From NCBI GenBank assembly GCA_013416795.1, contig RQSC01000028.1, forward strand, positions 1,038,219 through 1,102,218: a DNA stretch of 64,000 nt, written 5' to 3'. The notes under the pieces were generated by a model. It was not told the origin of the DNA and ran no database searches. It saw only the letters and a list, made by a program, of their open reading frames with translations. The stretch's first letter is position 1. The number at the start of each line of letters is the position of its first letter. Positions 4,698-64,000 of this stretch are shown piece by piece. Both the position numbers and the translations under genes were made by a program. The stretch is from Prasinococcaceae sp. CCMP 1430. Its lineage: Eukaryota > Plantae > Prasinodermophyta.

Positions 4698-5120
4698 NNN
4701 NNNNNNNNNNNNNNNNNNNNNNNNNNNNNNNNNNNNNNNNNNNNNNNNNNNNNNNNNNNNNNNNNNNNNNNNNNNNNNNNNNNNNNNNNNNNNNNNNNNN
4801 NNNNNNNNNNNNNNNNNNNNNNNNNNNNNNNNNNNNNNNNNNNNNNNNNNNNNNNNNNNNNNNNNNNNNNNNNNNNNNNNNNNNNNNNNNNNNNNNNNNN
4901 NNNNNNNNNNNNNNNNNNNNNNNNNNNNNNNNNNNNNNNNNNNNNNNNNNNNNNNNNNNNNNNNNNNNNNNNNNNNNNNNNNNNNNNNNNNNNNNNNNNN
5001 NNNNNNNNNNNNNNNNNNNNNNNNNNNNNNNNNNNNNNNNNNNNNNNNNNNNNNNNNNNNNNNNNNNNNNNNNNNNNNNNNNNNNNNNNNNNNNNNNNNN
5101 NNNNNNNNNNNNNNNNNNNN
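4698..5120. other. Assembly gap (N run) at a divergent promoter
   Basis: N run read directly. Confidence 1.
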
Positions 5121-25632: not shown

Positions 25633-25732
25633 NNNNNNNNNNNNNNNNNNNNNNNNNNNNNNNNNNNNNNNNNNNNNNNNNNNNNNNNNNNNNNNNNNNN
25701 NNNNNNNNNNNNNNNNNNNNNNNNNNNNNNNN
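25633..25732. other. 100-N gap (typical placeholder of unknown size)
   Basis: Exactly 100 N. Confidence 1.
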
Positions 25733-26619: not shown

Positions 26620-28290
26620 ATGGCGGATGCGGCGGAGGGCGGCAGCGGCCAGGGCAGCGGCGGTGGCGACGGCGCTGCACCCGACGTGGAGCTGAGACCC
26701 TCTGGGGCCGAACCGGTGGCTGAGGTTGCGTCCGACGGGGCCGATTCGGGCGATGACGCCGATGCGGTTCTGTCTGAGCTCGTGGAGGGCGTGCAGGAGG
26801 AAGCGGCGGCCACGTCCGTGCAAGCAGCATACCGCGGCTACCGCGTTCGCAAGACGCCGCTCAAGGAACGCAGCGTGCCCCCAGAGGACGCCGCCTCCGA
26901 CGGCGCCTCGTCACGCTCTGGGATCGCATCCGAAGCCGACTTGGCGGCGGAGGCGGAGGGAGCGCCCGTTCTGGACGGCGGCGCGCCGTCCGATGCAGAG
27001 AACGACACCCTCAGCGACTCAGACTCAGGCGTGGAGGGGAAGGAGGACGACGGCACTGCACTTAAGAGCTCGGGAATGGATTCCTTAAAGGAGGGGACAG
27101 TCGAACAGAGCGACAGTGGCCACGAGGCCGCCAAGCAGCTCGAGGAGGAAATGGAAGCCCCCGACGAGGTGCTCGCGCAGCTCGTCGATGAAGTCTCCAC
27201 GTACGATGCGCCGGAAGACACGGGCGGACATGAGGGGGAAAGCGTCGAGGACGACGCCCTCGCAGTCTCCGCGTACGATGCGCCGGAAGACACGGGCGGA
27301 CATGAGGGGGAAAGCGTCGAGGACGACGCCCTCGCTGTTGGCGCGGCCGCTGGAGCCAGCGTCGACGCTAGCGCCAATGCGTCTCTGCTCGCGGAGCTCG
27401 AAGACATGCGGCGAAGGCTGCGCGAGGCAGAAGCTGCATTGCAGGCGGACACTGCGATGGTGTCGGAGCTCGAGGAGACGAGGCGCGCAGCGCAGCGCGC
27501 AGAGGCTGTAGCCGAGAGCGCGTGTGAGGACCGCGCGAGGTTGCTCGAGGAGAACGAAGCGTTGCGGCACGAGCTCGCGCACTGGCGCGACCGCAGCGAG
27601 GAAGCCGAAGCCCAGGCGACCGAGGCGCGGCGCGACGCTGCCGAGCACCTTGAGCGTCTCGACGCCGAGCGGCGCGACGCTGCCGAGAACCTTGAGCGTC
27701 TCGACGCCGAGCGGCGCGCGCGGGCGCGCGACAGTGAGGCCGTCCGAGCTGTGCAGGAGCTTTCCGTGGCGGCTGAGTCCTCCACCGGCCAGTGGGCGCA
27801 GGAGCGGGCCAAGCTCAGAGGGCAGCTCCGACGTCTCCGGAGCGACGCTGAGCGGCACCGAACGGCAATGGCTGCCTATGCCAGCCAAGCAGTGCCGCTC
27901 AAGCACCAGCTCGACGAGCTGGTGGCGAGGCTTTGCCACGAATCAGACGTGTACGGCGCGAGTCCCGCGGTGGTCAACGCGTCGCTGCGCTCGCCCGAGA
28001 GGCAGGTGCCGATGCCGTCTCTGGCGGCACAGCTCACTCCGAGCTCGACATCCTCTTTGAGCGCGCTGCGCGAGCTGCGGGCGAGACGCAACCACGCCGT
28101 GGACGTGACCTCGGCGAACAAGGCTGTCAAGCTTCCAAGCGTGGCGAAAGTCAAGAACGACGGGCGCTACCGGACCACGCGGAGGCCGGCGTCGGCTGTC
28201 GCATCCTCGCTAGCGGCGGCGGCCAGCGACTTGCAAGAGAAGCGGAACGCGGCGATTCGTGAGATCAATCGCATTCGCCGCTTCTCGTAA
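26620..28290 (+). CDS. IQ-motif, acidic coiled-coil protein (556 aa)
   Basis: IQ motif ATSVQAAYRGYRVRK, an acidic disordered half and a long coiled coil. Confidence 0.75.
   Translation: MADAAEGGSGQGSGGGDGAAPDVELRPSGAEPVAEVASDGADSGDDADAVLSELVEGVQEEAAATSVQAAYRGYRVRKTPLKERSVPPEDAASDGASSRSGIASEADLAAEAEGAPVLDGGAPSDAENDTLSDSDSGVEGKEDDGTALKSSGMDSLKEGTVEQSDSGHEAAKQLEEEMEAPDEVLAQLVDEVSTYDAPEDTGGHEGESVEDDALAVSAYDAPEDTGGHEGESVEDDALAVGAAAGASVDASANASLLAELEDMRRRLREAEAALQADTAMVSELEETRRAAQRAEAVAESACEDRARLLEENEALRHELAHWRDRSEEAEAQATEARRDAAEHLERLDAERRDAAENLERLDAERRARARDSEAVRAVQELSVAAESSTGQWAQERAKLRGQLRRLRSDAERHRTAMAAYASQAVPLKHQLDELVARLCHESDVYGASPAVVNASLRSPERQVPMPSLAAQLTPSSTSSLSALRELRARRNHAVDVTSANKAVKLPSVAKVKNDGRYRTTRRPASAVASSLAAAASDLQEKRNAAIREINRIRRFS
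27193..27336 (+). repeat. 72-bp in-frame tandem duplication (2 copies, 2 mismatches)
   Basis: YDAPEDTGGHEGESVEDDALA appears twice. Confidence 0.95.
27628..27711 (+). repeat. 42-bp in-frame tandem duplication (2 copies, 1 mismatch)
   Basis: RRDAAEHLERLDAE followed by RRDAAENLERLDAE. Confidence 0.95.
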
Positions 28291-30907: not shown

Positions 30908-30917
30908 CCCCCCCCCC

Positions 30918-30956
<39 letters not shown>
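30908..30956. repeat. Poly-C/poly-G tract (C10-T-C38)
   Basis: Read directly from the sequence. Confidence 0.95.
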
Positions 30957-31367
30957 TGCGCGCGCGCGGCGCGCGCGCAGTGTGCCAGGCGCCGCGCCGC
31001 GCCGCGTGCCCGCATCGCTGATAGCGACACCCGAAGTCCTCAGAAGGATGAGATAGCAGCGCACGCGCGCGCGCACGGCCGCACACACGCAACCACACGA
31101 ACGCGAATGCACGTGCGTGCACACGCGCGCGCGCCCAGCCCCATCCCCCGTGGTGCCCCTGCGGCGGGGGGGATGTGCTGTTCATACTGCGCACCGGGCA
31201 CTGCGCAGCGAAGCGCGTGCTGGCCGCACGTACGCCACGGCACAAAAAAGTCATTATTACACGCGCGAGCGAGGGCGCATGCCTCGCGCACTCGACACTA
31301 TGAACGCCGAGCGCACAAGGCAGGCCCTGTTGGTGCCACACACACAGCGCGAGGTCGGGAGTGTGAG

Positions 31368-46786: not shown

Positions 46787-47127
46787 NNNNNNNNNNNNNN
46801 NNNNNNNNNNNNNNNNNNNNNNNNNNNNNNNNNNNNNNNNNNNNNNNNNNNNNNNNNNNNNNNNNNNNNNNNNNNNNNNNNNNNNNNNNNNNNNNNNNNN
46901 NNNNNNNNNNNNNNNNNNNNNNNNNNNNNNNNNNNNNNNNNNNNNNNNNNNNNNNNNNNNNNNNNNNNNNNNNNNNNNNNNNNNNNNNNNNNNNNNNNNN
47001 NNNNNNNNNNNNNNNNNNNNNNNNNNNNNNNNNNNNNNNNNNNNNNNNNNNNNNNNNNNNNNNNNNNNNNNNNNNNNNNNNNNNNNNNNNNNNNNNNNNN
47101 NNNNNNNNNNNNNNNNNNNNNNNNNNN
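46787..47127. other. Assembly gap at a divergent promoter
   Basis: N run read directly. Confidence 1.
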
Positions 47128-53233: not shown

Positions 53234-53623
53234 NNNNNNNNNNNNNNNNNNNNNNNNNNNNNNNNNNNNNNNNNNNNNNNNNNNNNNNNNNNNNNNNNNN
53301 NNNNNNNNNNNNNNNNNNNNNNNNNNNNNNNNNNNNNNNNNNNNNNNNNNNNNNNNNNNNNNNNNNNNNNNNNNNNNNNNNNNNNNNNNNNNNNNNNNNN
53401 NNNNNNNNNNNNNNNNNNNNNNNNNNNNNNNNNNNNNNNNNNNNNNNNNNNNNNNNNNNNNNNNNNNNNNNNNNNNNNNNNNNNNNNNNNNNNNNNNNNN
53501 NNNNNNNNNNNNNNNNNNNNNNNNNNNNNNNNNNNNNNNNNNNNNNNNNNNNNNNNNNNNNNNNNNNNNNNNNNNNNNNNNNNNNNNNNNNNNNNNNNNN
53601 NNNNNNNNNNNNNNNNNNNNNNN
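53234..53623. other. Assembly gap at a divergent promoter
   Basis: N run read directly. Confidence 1.
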
Positions 53624-58650: not shown

Positions 58651-58847
58651 GGTGACAGCACCTCCGGGTCCCCGCGAGCAGCGGGCGTCGTCGTCCCCGA
58701 GAGGCGAGAGCCCCCGAGGATGTTAAAAGCGACCAGACGCGGCAGATGTGGGTGCGCGCCCACACGCACGCAGCGACGAAAGCGGAAAGAGGCTGAGGGA
58801 CGGCGTACCTCGCACGGGCGGCGCCTGCGTCCTCCCTTCCTCCCCTC

Positions 58848-58848
<1 letters not shown>

Positions 58849-58891
<43 letters not shown>
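58849..58891. repeat. Poly-C/poly-G tract (about 43 nt) in a divergent promoter
   Basis: Read directly from the sequence. Confidence 0.95.
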
Positions 58892-58892
<1 letters not shown>

Positions 58893-59148
58893 CGCACTCG
58901 CCGCGCAGTGTGGCCCGCCGCGGCGCCGCGTGGGATGACCAACGCAAGAATGGCTGAGGCGAAATTTTCCAACGTGCGAGCAGAGGCCGGAGCATCCCCG
59001 GAGACCCTCTCAACATCCACATCCACGCCGCAGCGTCGCGCCACACACGCGCGGCGAGGCGCGGCGCGGCGCGGCGCGGCGGGCTCGTACGCGCGCCGCG
59101 CGCGCGGCTGCGGGCGCCGGCGCGGGGCGGCCCGACGACGAAGCGTTC

Positions 59149-59643
59149 ATGCGCGAGGCGGTGGAGCTCGCGCTGCGCGCGCAGGGCAAGACGCATCCGA
59201 ACCCCGTGGTGGGTTGCATCATCGTCAGTGCCTCGGGCGAGGTCGTCGGTCGCGGCTTCCACCCGAAGGCGGGCGAGCCGCACGCGGAGATATTTGCGCT
59301 GCGTGATGCGGGCCTCGACGTGAGCGCCGCGGCGGGTGACCCCGAGTGGACGGTGGAAGGAGATCAGGCGCGCGGGTGCACGGCGTACGTCACGCTGGAA
59401 CCGTGCGACCACGTGGGCCGCACACCGCCGTGCTCGCGCGCGCTGGTCGCGGCTGGCGTGTCCCGCGTCGTCGTCGGTTGCGGCGACCCGGACCCGCGCG
59501 TGGATGGCGGCGGCATCCGCACACTGCAGGCGGCGGGCGTCGAAGTGTCGGTGGGCGTCGAGGAGCAGATGTGCCTCGACGCCAACGTAGAATTCTTCGA
59601 CAGGCTCAAGGCTGAGCGCGACGCCGCCAACGCAAGCAGCTAA
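59149..59643 (+). CDS. PYRD: Riboflavin pathway pyrimidine deaminase (RibD deaminase domain only, plant PyrD type)
   Basis: THPNPVVGCIIV, KAGEPHAE, YVTLEPCDHVGRTPPC, DPDPRVDGGG. There is no reductase domain. Confidence 0.92.
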   Translation: MREAVELALRAQGKTHPNPVVGCIIVSASGEVVGRGFHPKAGEPHAEIFALRDAGLDVSAAAGDPEWTVEGDQARGCTAYVTLEPCDHVGRTPPCSRALVAAGVSRVVVGCGDPDPRVDGGGIRTLQAAGVEVSVGVEEQMCLDANVEFFDRLKAERDAANASS

Positions 59644-60144
59644 TGCGAGCGTCTCGCTGTTATATGATTCTCTCTCCAGTCACTAGTGCGCCCACGTCGG
59701 TGCGCTCGCGTGCGCGGAACCCGACGGGCGAGCGCCTGGCTGGGGCGACCGCCGGCGGGTGCGTCGTGCTGCTATCGTCACGCCTGGACCCCGCGCTCTC
59801 GCTGTCGTGTGGCGAGCGCCTCGGAGACGAGCGCGAGCTCGAGGTCGGCCTTGCGTGCAGCGTGCCGTGCAGTCCCGTCATGACTTATCGAAAAGTGCGC
59901 CCGCGAGTGGAACGGAACCGGATGAGGTGTGATGGGCGATTGGGGGGGAAGCGAAGGTGCCACAAGTGCGGCGGTGCGCGCGCTCTTCCCCCTTCTTCCC
60001 CCTTCTCACGTCGCCCCGCCCCCCACCCCTCGTCGTCGGCGGGGCGCAGCGCTCTCTCTCTCTCTCTCCTCCCCCCCCCTTCCAGCCCTTCAACCCCGCC
60101 CGCCTCTCCCGCCGCTCTCGAGCTCTTGCCGGCGCGCGCGCGGG

Positions 60145-61452
60145 ATGTCGTTCGCCGACAGCCTGTCGCGGCGCAGGGCCGGTGGCGGCCTTCCAGTTGC
60201 GGGTGAAGGGCGTCGACCAGCACGAGGCGGCACGTCTCGGCGAGCCGCTGCGCAGGATCTGCGCGGATGCGGACGTGGCATTCATCGTCAATGAGCGAGC
60301 TGGGCCACAGGCGGGGCGAGCTGGGGTGCGGGCGGCGCGGGCGGTGTGGCGGGCGGCGGCGCTGCCGGGCGCGTGGCGCAGGGGGGCAGGGCGCCGGCTG
60401 CGGGGGGTGGCAGCTTCTCCGCGGGTCAAGGCTTTGGCGCAGGTGGGAGCTCGACGGACGGCGGGGTGCAAGCGAGCGGCACAGTGGCGGAGCGTGCCGT
60501 CGGAGCAGCGCAGGCGGCCGCGGAGACGTTTGCCCGCGCCGTGGCTGCGCTCAGCCGAGCCCTCGCGGACGGTGCCGACGACAGCCAGGTGCTCGGCGCG
60601 CTGCTCGCAGAAGCAGAGGGTGCGGGGCGTAAGGCGCACGCGGAGATATCTCGCGTGCCATGCGAAAAATTGGCGACCGCGTCCAAGCTGCGGACAGACG
60701 TCGAGGAGAGGCTCGATCTTCAGCTCGCGAGGCTGCGGCGTGAGGTCGCCGCCGCAAGGCTTCGCAGCAACCGCAGTGCCTCCGGCGATGCTGGCGGCTC
60801 GGCAGCGACTAGCAGCTCACAGCGCGACCAGGGCAAGACAGGCAACTTCATGAACGGCGGGGCCTCGCCTTGGGCATCTGAGCTGGGCGTGCGTGACGGC
60901 TCGCGCCAGGTGCAGGAAGAGGATGCTGTCGTGGCCGAGGAGCGGCGCATGCTGCAGGAGCAGCAGAAGCGTGCCGAGCAGGAGGCGCAAGAGATAGAAG
61001 CGCAGATTGCATTCAATGAGTGCGTGCGCTTTGGCCACTGCTCCACGCCCCCGTCCCGCGCCCCGAATCAACGCAGGTCCTGGCGTGCGCGCTCAGTCTG
61101 TCTGCTGCGGGCGCGTTCGCGAGCGAGCACGCAACGCCGTGCGCGTGCCCCGTTCACGCCTCCCAAGGCACGGGTCCACCCCTGCCGCTGACACGTGTGC
61201 GCGCCCTCACGTATCAATGGCGCGCGCGGCAGGGATCTCATTGCCGAACGTGAGGAGGGCATCGAGCAGGCCATCGAAGACATCCACGACATCAAGGAGG
61301 TATTCCAAAACCTGGCGACGCTTGTGGCTGAGCAGGGCGAGACTCTCGAGGACATTGACGACAACATGACGCGGACGGCCATGCAGACCAAGGCAGCTGT
61401 CGGGCAGCTCAAGGAGGCGCACAAGATGAGCTCTAAATGCGCCGTGATGTGA
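60145..61452 (+). CDS. Qa-SNARE of the syntaxin-7/12/Pep12/SYP2 type, without a TM anchor and ending in CaaX
   Basis: Start MSFAD. Intron 61020-61232 gives QIAFNEDLIAEREEGIEQ...IKEVFQNLATLVAEQGETLEDIDDNM. Ends KCAVM*. The frame is interrupted by TGA 60292-60294 unless 60182-60295 is removed. Confidence 0.85.
60173..60294 (+). pseudogene. thiE: About 40-codon fragment resembling alphaproteobacterial (sphingomonad) thiamine-phosphate synthase
   Basis: An alternative frame reads AGPVAAFQLRVKGVDQHEAARLGEPLRRICADADVAFIVN, which I recognise as the ThiE QLRxK...FIVND segment. The similarity stops abruptly on both sides. Confidence 0.8.
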
Positions 61453-61609
61453 CCGCCTAAAGCAAACCTCACACACATGACACTGTCGCCTCGCGCACAG
61501 GATAAGGACTATCACGTCGCGGAAAGAATGTGCGAATACATTGCCCACACAGTGGGCACCCATGAGATTCCACCCAACAGAGGATATGCCGTCCCCGCGT
61601 GACACACAC

Positions 61610-63542
61610 TCACGCAAGCATCGGCCGCGGCAGCCCCGAACGGGCGCCGGCCGGACCCACTTCCCTGGCGCCGAGGACGAGCGCGCCAAGCGCCCACTCG
61701 ATGCTCACGCCGCCTGCGTGGTTGGCGAAGTATACGTCGGGCGAGACGCCGCTCGCGCCTGCATCCGCCTCCTGCCCAGCAGCGCCCGCGCGCTCCAGGA
61801 AGGCCGATATTAGCGCGCTCGAGAAGCAGCTTGTGCGCGCGTTGAAGAGCTCGCCCTCGTCCCCGTGCGCGCGCGCCTCAATGTCGGACCACGGACGCGC
61901 GCAGTGTGCCGCGCCCGCGGTCGCAAAAGAGGTCACCGTCATTGGCTTCGCCTGCACAGCACGGGGTCAGCACCGCAGCAGCGCTACCCCCTTCTTCCAG
62001 CATTGCAGGCGCAGACACGACCGCCCAAAACGCGCGCGCGCATCGTACCTCGTCGAAGCCGTCAAGGTACTCCGCCTTGGCGAAGTACTTGGCAGTGTAA
62101 AGTGCGTTCTCCGTGGCGTACACGACTGGCGCGTTCGCCAACGAAGGGAATTGCTTGCCCGCCACGCACACTTCGCCTGTGCGATCAGCCTCCCTCCCTC
62201 CACTCCCGCGGCACCCCTCCGTCGCGAGCAGCACCTCATCTACAAGCGCGCGGCAGGCGCGGAAGTCGCCACTGCCATCGAGGCTGACCTGCGTCCCGCC
62301 CGTGCCTGTGCTCACGGCTCCAGCGTCTGCGCTCTCGCTGCGACCGCGCGGCAGGCAGGGGTGCGCGCTCGTCTTCTGGCCGGCGGCGGCAGCCTTGGCC
62401 GAGAGGTGTGCGTTCACGCGAGAGTGCGCGGAATCCATCCCCAGACCGAGAAACGAGTGCACAAACACGTCCTGCTTCACCCCCCCGAGGGAGACTGAGA
62501 CCGTATCCTCGTCCAGGACGTCCCCGGAGTCGCCGGAGTCGACCATTTCGACGAGCGCGACCTGCGCAGAGGCGCCACCGACCTCAAACATGGCCACAGA
62601 CCTCGCAGCGTCCTCGACGCCTGCAGCGCGTAGCGCGTGGTTCACGGCGGCCCAGCCAAAGAGCGCCTCCTCGCGACCCGAGATGACGCGTGCGCCGGTG
62701 GCAACGTCGAAGGCAAAGGGCGACACGGCCAGCTGCCTCGCACACGCGGCCAGCAGCTGCGCCTGCTTGGCTTCTGGGAGCAAGCGCATGCCCGCCGTCG
62801 CCATCAGCCGCACGCGCGTCGCCTTGCGTGCGGTGACTGGCACGTGTGCAACCGCAAAGCGCAAGAGCTGAGCGACGCTTGCGGCCGCCCCGTCAGGGTC
62901 GGAGGCGTACGCAGACAGGCCCGGCGACACCTTCAGGTCACGGGTGGAGAGCAACAGGACGGCGCCGTCGCCGCGGGCGCCACCGACCGTGTACTCGTAC
63001 ACGTGCACGCGCGTGCCCGTGCTACCTGCGTCTAGGACGACGTCGTATCGCGGTCGTGCCACGCCAGGCACGTTCCCGCCCAGCGCGAGCAGCACGAGCA
63101 GCGCCGCCGCAGCGATGGCAGCCAGCAGCACCGGGAGTCTGCGATTCGACCGCCGCATTTGACCGATCACCCGCCGCAGCGCGCCCATCGCGCCGCCTCG
63201 CAACTCTTTGTTTGCCCCACCGTCTCCAGGTGAGAGTGCCCCCGCGGCGTTGCCCTCGGGCTGCCACCGGGAGAAGTGGATCACGCGCGAGTGCGGGCTG
63301 CTGCTCGCACCGTGCGCGCTCCCGGCGGAGTGTGCCGGCACAGCGGCCAGCGCCGCAGCGGCGAGCGAGTCCTGGATAGACGAGTTCCGGCGCAGGTGGG
63401 CTGGCGCTGGTGCTGGCGCTGGAGCGGCGGCGGCGGCGGCGGCCGCCGCTCCCTGTGGCGCGACTGCCGGCGGCTGGTGGTGGAGCGCGACCGACGACGA
63501 GCCGCGGCGGAGCACGCGTGCCTCGCGGTGGCCCTCTCGCAT
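61610..63542 (-). CDS. GDA1/CD39 apyrase (nucleoside diphosphatase), type II membrane
   Basis: Apyrase conserved regions DAGSTGTR, ATAGMRLL, ISGREEALFGW, EVGGASAQ, HSFLGLG and EWALGA. Intron 61952-62048. The start is 63542 or 63188. Confidence 0.92.
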
Positions 63543-64000
63543 CCGCCGCGTTCGAGGTCGGCCGCGGCCGCGAGCGCACGCCGCGGCCCGCGCGGCCGCG
63601 ACCAACTCCCCCCTCCCTTCCACCGAGGAGGGGAAGGGGCCGGGCGGCCAAGGTGAAGGGGAGGGGGGAAAGGGGGGGGCGAGCCCGGCACGCCGTGTGG
63701 CGGAAGGGGGCGCACGTGCCGCGCAGCGAGCGAGCGGCCCACGCGCACCGATGGCTTTTCACCGTTTCCACTTTCGCATTGGCCAGCAGTTCATTTTCTC
63801 CCCTCTCTGTGGGGAGATGCGCTGATGCGCTACAAGCCGCACGCCCGGCGCGGGCGTGGGGCGTGTCCCGGCGAGGCGCGCCTCTGGCGCCTCGCTCAGC
63901 GAGGCGCGCGGCACGGGTCGGGCTGCGGCGGCCGAGAGGGCGACGGGGATGGGGGTGTCATCGCTTGGCGCCCTCTTGCCGCGCACGGCGCGCGCGGCGG

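Follow-up and report, generated by a model that had tools for sequence, protein, structure and literature searches.

A Sphingomonas-like thiE fragment in a Qa-SNARE gene of Prasinococcaceae sp. CCMP 1430 is probably an assembly or library chimera

Joins derived from contaminants in draft eukaryotic assemblies, whether introduced by gap fillers, by polishers or as chimeric reads, can mimic horizontal gene transfer, as in the tardigrade horizontal transfer controversy. Extraneous DNA is also captured as filler at repaired double-strand breaks, for example in NHEJ/MMEJ insertions, in NUMTs and NUPTs, and as junk fragments at transformation sites; repair of this kind yields a deletion together with a filler of several pieces joined at microhomologies. 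De novo intron gain from inserted DNA is represented by the introner elements of Micromonas (on its introns, PMC3879977) and of other algae, and by repair-mediated intron gain. The locus described here lies in a stretch of 64,000 nucleotides that was analyzed as a whole (the window) and comes from an alga that is marine by its metatranscriptome and Tara matches. At face value it would count as a bacterium-to-alga gene transfer combined with the birth of an intron. The evidence points to a defect of the reference, the true gene having at this place an uninterrupted exon that is 87-99 bp shorter. The features of the site are as follows.

60145 to 60189, plus strand: native start of a Qa-SNARE (syntaxin-like) gene, its first 15 codons being MSFADSLSRRRAGGG; identical in contig 17 of DNA run X2 and in Tara scaffold L058
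60169 to 60189, plus strand: left junction, 21 nt over which the algal gene and thiE are nearly identical, with a perfect 14-nt run at 60176-60189 against the thiE of locus L003
60169 to 60294, plus strand: sphingomonad thiE fragment of about 125 bp, equivalent to approximately residues 62-101 of a 235-aa ORF in locus L001
60190 to 60336, plus strand: segment unique to this assembly, 147 bp in place of 60 (X2) or 48 (Tara) native letters
60292 to 60294, plus strand: frame-breaking TGA, at the very end of the thiE piece
60293 to 60347, plus strand: exact 55-bp copy of another transcribed algal locus, found in X2 contig 22 and in RNA runs X15 and X16
60337 to 61019, plus strand: rest of native exon 1, colinear with X2 contig 17 and covered over 60518-61019 by X15 RNA contig 3
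61020 to 61232, plus strand: genuine spliceosomal intron of 213 nt, GTGCG...AG, its joint 61019->61233 present in X15 RNA contig 3 (side 255)
61233 to 61452, plus strand: exon 2 with the Qa-SNARE motif, the stop following CAVM

The frame that opens at ATG 60145 reads MSFADSLSRRRAGGGLPVAGEG..., meets the TGA, as the original prediction had seen, and is then open to 61019. Exon 2 finds in the PDB a SNAP receptor-like protein (5buz_C) and the motifs of syntaxin 7 and syntaxin 13, with E values of 1e-7 to 7e-6, and because of these matches "syntaxin-like Qa-SNARE" is a fair name for the gene; the Pfam SNARE match of the same exon is weak (E 0.005). The SNARE motif is closest to those of the endosomal syntaxins 7 and 13 and of the SNAP receptor-like protein. 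The encoded protein ends in ...KMSSKCAVM-stop, a CaaX-like box, and a C-terminal transmembrane anchor or hydrophobic tail is absent.

The frame from 60173 (60173-60298) translates as AGPVAAFQLRVKGVDQHEAARLGEPLRRICADADVAFIVNER. In a profile search this fragment aligned to positions 24-64 of the 180 in PF02581 (TMP-TENI), scoring 27.8 bits, where the cut-off is 27, at an E value of 1.9e-6; it matched TIGR00693 (thiE) with an E value of 6e-7 and 28.9 bits, which is below the 145.1-bit cut-off for the full-length protein. Its top match among solved structures is a thiamine phosphate pyrophosphorylase. A 48-aa query scanned against bacterial and archaeal species, one genome for each (185,579 species genomes), recovered 57 related loci, every one of them from Sphingomonadales or from unclassified alphaproteobacterial MAGs, with Sphingomonas sp. 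R-74633 (L001) ranked at the top. The original prediction had recognized ThiE of Sphingomonadales in this stretch, and the two profiles and the 57 loci agree with it. The nucleotide resemblance to a sphingomonad thiE that it anticipated extends over 60169/70-60294, where L002 shares 91% of the bases and L001 88%.

All 40 amino acids of the fragment are the same in the L001 protein, where the match sits within the 235-aa thiE ORF, and 15 of 15 base differences are synonymous; the sole nonsynonymous codon relative to L001 is that at 60293-60295, which straddles the right end. Since the residues are identical and the base differences synonymous, the fragment is coding DNA that has not decayed and that stems from a living bacterium related to these sphingomonads. 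Homology to bacterial genes ends at 60169 and at 60294, so that the complete TIM-barrel domain of approximately 180 positions is not present in one ORF, and a search around the fragment for the remainder of the gene found none of it, in line with the claim that nothing else of thiE lies nearby. No bacterium with 100% identity was found as a donor, and a scan of JGI metagenome contigs with the 26-nt 3' end of the thiE piece was blank.

The thiE fragment is only one part of a mosaic. At the left, the 21 nt from 60169 to 60189 agree with sphingomonad thiE at 20 of 21 positions in L003 and at 18 of 21 in L001; these bases are native, because X2 and the Tara scaffold both match the window up to 60189. 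The thiE piece ends at 60294 and the copy of the other locus begins at 60293, an overlap of approximately 2 nt. That copy, which occurs once in the window, is carried in X2 contig 22 (6716 bp), X15 RNA contig 2 (909 bp) and X16 contig 5, and because its flanks differ on both sides in X2, X15 and X16 it duplicates a different algal locus, one that is transcribed. The right junction is formed by the final 11 nt of this copy (60337-60347), which are shared with the resumed native gene. The second piece did not come from nearby, since the flank of its source locus and the native 48-mer were both searched for across the window and are absent; a scan of JGI metagenome contigs for the source locus, with the 34-nt core of 60293-60347, was blank.

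The original prediction had described a plain insertion at 60173-60295. The piece is there, whereas the limits and the plain insertion do not hold: the homology spans 60169/70-60294, and 48-60 native bases have been replaced. The feature is thus a native stretch exchanged for 147 bases and not a clean insertion into an intact gene, because no copy of the native 48-mer exists in the window and X2 and Tara carry other bases at this place.

The native form of the gene is provided by independent sequencing of the organism. For 59000-62000 there are 24 public runs, the source reads of the assembly not being among them; one DNA run (X2) and three RNA runs (X15, X16 and X17) were compared in detail, as Logan contigs, which show presence and not absence and from which a minority or private variant could be missed. 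X2 contig 17 (6133 bp, depth 94.6) matches 59090-60189 and 60337-62000 with at most one mismatch over approximately 2.9 kb. Its joint 60189->60337 skips the 147 bases and has 60 other letters between, and because the difference, 87, is divisible by three, the frame opened by ATG 60145 continues in X2. Each of 14 DNA runs of the same organism contains 0.92 of the sampled words and no run has the full set, a share approximately equal to what the loss of the words of 60190-60336 predicts. Partial coverage of 59000-62000 was found in two RNA runs of the organism and in several marine metatranscriptomes. Over 60111-60312 the depth of X2 exceeds what contigs 17 and 22 account for, in the bin 60212-60312 by roughly 12-15; this excess over the thiE piece could be due to GC-rich look-alikes or to a Sphingomonas-like contig in the culture.

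Wild relatives carry an uninterrupted gene. A protein search with 60337-61020 returned one cluster, whose representative (P0001), from a Tara Oceans metagenome assembly, is 99% identical to the query protein. The gene of this representative lies on Tara scaffold L058, which keeps the order of the window over 59086-64000, with an identity of 94% over 59086-60189 (three gap openings) and of 98.7% over 60337-64000, and has a single break at 60189/60337 with 48 bp between. All 12 distinct environmental protein variants have the N-terminus encoded by 60145-60189 and read continuously MSFADSLSRRRAGGG-GAFDAG(A/T)SAFAGGGG(V/M)-AGGVAGGGAAGRV..., and neither the stop nor thiE occurs in any of the 12. 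The original prediction had named orthologs in sister strains lacking the insert as a check; L058 and the 12 variants are all without the thiE piece. The native stretch after the start codon codes for Gly/Ala and is 48-60 bp long with a GC content of 75-80%. Its length is 60 letters in the culture run X2 and 48 in L058 (1067-1114), which suggests that the SNARE N-terminus has a repeat-length polymorphism. Downstream in L058, genes for a GDA1/CD39 nucleoside phosphatase (minus strand) and a DUF924 protein were called.

We consider it most likely that 60190-60336 is a chimera that arose in gap filling, in assembly or in library preparation, and that it is not part of the gene of the alga. An assembly chimera with a culture-associated bacterium was one of the two readings offered originally, and it is the one that the data favor. 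The segment is restricted to this assembly, and the native sequence has been lost at the same place. The sources brought together are unrelated and meet at overlaps of 14-21 nt on the left and 11 nt on the right, with only approximately 2 nt in the middle. The independent genomic DNA, in which a genuine insertion should be present, lacks the segment in X2, in the 14 DNA runs by word share, in the Tara scaffold and in the 12 environmental variants. GC content is 0.72-0.80 across the site and 66.5% for the alga. The window contains five runs of N at 4698-5120 (423), 6746 (1), 25633-25732 (100), 46787-47127 (341) and 53234-53623 (390). The assembly is a scaffolded draft, and it is plausible that further short fills, foreign or out of place, lie close to GC-rich spots. 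The gaps make the gap-free PacBio assembly of Prasinoderma coloniale (PMC7455551) an unlikely source of the window, and Micromonas pusilla CCMP1545, a Sanger draft with hundreds of gaps (PMC4815162), is unsupported as one, since introner-type repeats are missing from the window.

A sequence of events may be proposed. The GC-rich Gly/Ala stretch after the start codon would have been a low-coverage spot that was bridged by foreign sequence. A Sphingomonas-like thiE read, from a culture associate or a reagent contaminant, would have been recruited through the chance overlap of 14-21 bases, and the 55 bases of another algal locus would then have served as a second filler, re-entering the true gene through the 11-base overlap. 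The joining step itself may have been performed by a gap filler or by a local re-assembler or polisher, or may have taken place in a chimeric library or PCR molecule. The middle junction of approximately 2 nt is better fitted by a chimeric molecule than by a k-mer walk. On this reading the stop codon is a by-product, as is the "excisable intron", and neither has a biological role.

The middle junction also resembles ligation or end joining, and in this respect a chimeric library molecule and repair in vivo fit equally well. A private lesion of the sequenced clone would have started from a double-strand break in the 5' coding region; microhomology-mediated end joining or template switching would have closed the break, with the deletion of 48-60 native bases and the capture of approximately 105 bp of DNA from a co-cultured Sphingomonas and 44 bp from another algal locus. 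A deletion with a filler of several pieces and junction microhomologies of 21, 2 and 11 nt is the expected product of such repair, and the surrounding sequence is otherwise perfectly colinear. Against this, neither X2 nor, judged by word share, any of the 14 later DNA samples contains the segment, and the 12 wild variants lack it too. Unless the piece were spliced out, the lesion would truncate the SNARE gene in a haploid alga, and the knockout of a conserved Qa-SNARE in an alga that is presumably haploid is a further difficulty. For a culture lineage to capture bacterial DNA is also a far rarer event than an assembly error in a gapped, GC-rich draft. We therefore regard a lesion in vivo as unlikely. 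If it were true, the locus would be a snapshot of bacterial DNA first landing in an algal nuclear gene, with a possible rescue by cryptic splicing.

An intron gain in progress, the other reading originally offered, is very improbable. It would hold that the insertion is real and is spliced out as a 114-nt GT-AG intron at 60182-60295, leaving the gene functional. The GT at 60182 and the AG at 60294-60295 are indeed present and their excision restores an open frame, so that this much of the claim stands. Its significance does not: among 153 GT-AG pairs with the stop between them, 57 give a stop-free, in-frame product, and in-frame excision is consequently uninformative. The donor GTGGCG had already been noted as departing from the local donors, and the verified intron at 61020 does have GTGCG. 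No RNA contig of X15, X16 or X17 extends over 60084-60292, where the thiE piece lies, nor do the contigs of these runs, which cannot show absence, contain a 60181^60296 joint, while the joint of the real intron at 61020-61232 is seen in X15. The spliced product would keep 14 foreign codons (60296-60336) where the native gene has 16-20. That independent DNA lacks the segment counts equally against this reading, as it is missing from X2 and all 12 wild variants have a continuous ORF. The original interpretation taken as a whole is thus partly supported.

It is scarcely credible that the piece belongs to the alga's own thiamine-phosphate synthase gene or to an old, fixed horizontal transfer, for which the family match alone can be adduced, since its protein is 100% the same as that of a living Sphingomonas ThiE with only synonymous differences at 88-91% nucleotide identity, the rest of the gene is not around the fragment, and the wild relatives are without it.

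The chimeric reading has a bearing on the use of this assembly. Gene models, and screens for horizontal transfer and intron gain, should be suspicious of short bacterial pieces in the GC-rich 5' ends of genes. Elsewhere in the window, poly-C tracts of approximately 40-50 C lie at 58839-58930 and 30909-31001, each followed by a GC-rich motif, GCGCGC...CGCAGTGTG..C; the two elements are 86% alike over 94 nt, and one of them lies upstream of a gene ending at 59643. They may represent a promoter or 5' element common to both places, or a site at which sequencing errors arise easily. An ORF within 59400-59643 (end 59641-59643) has a translation that, read by eye, resembles the C-terminal portion of a deaminase of the riboflavin pathway (CGDPDPRVDGGGIRTLQAAGVEV...). 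Near-perfect tandem duplications occur at 27192-27338 (72 nt x2, 97-99%) and 27627-27710 (42 nt x2, 98%).

Set beside bacterial thiamine-phosphate synthase ThiE (PF02581, TIGR00693), the fragment matches positions 24-64 with the same residues as a Sphingomonas ThiE; compared with the complete protein it is approximately one-fifth of the domain, is without a start and cannot be an enzyme. With de novo intron gain the locus shares additional DNA within a coding exon, bounded by GT...AG and divisible by three in length. It differs in its nonconsensus donor, in that the splice joint is not seen and in that the natural gene does not contain the segment, and no introner-type repeats or repeat family were found in the window. 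With filler-DNA capture it shares a deletion accompanied by several unrelated short fragments and microhomology at the junctions; in contrast to such captures, the event is in no independent DNA of the organism, and a bacterial donor would need to enter the nucleus without transformation. The contaminant-derived chimeric joins of draft assemblies likewise place short, undecayed bacterial coding DNA inside a eukaryotic scaffold at short overlaps, where a gapped draft is GC-rich and coverage is low, and are likewise absent from independent sequencing of the organism. The present case departs from them in that one of its three junctions is almost without overlap and in that the mosaic also includes DNA from a second locus of the algal genome.
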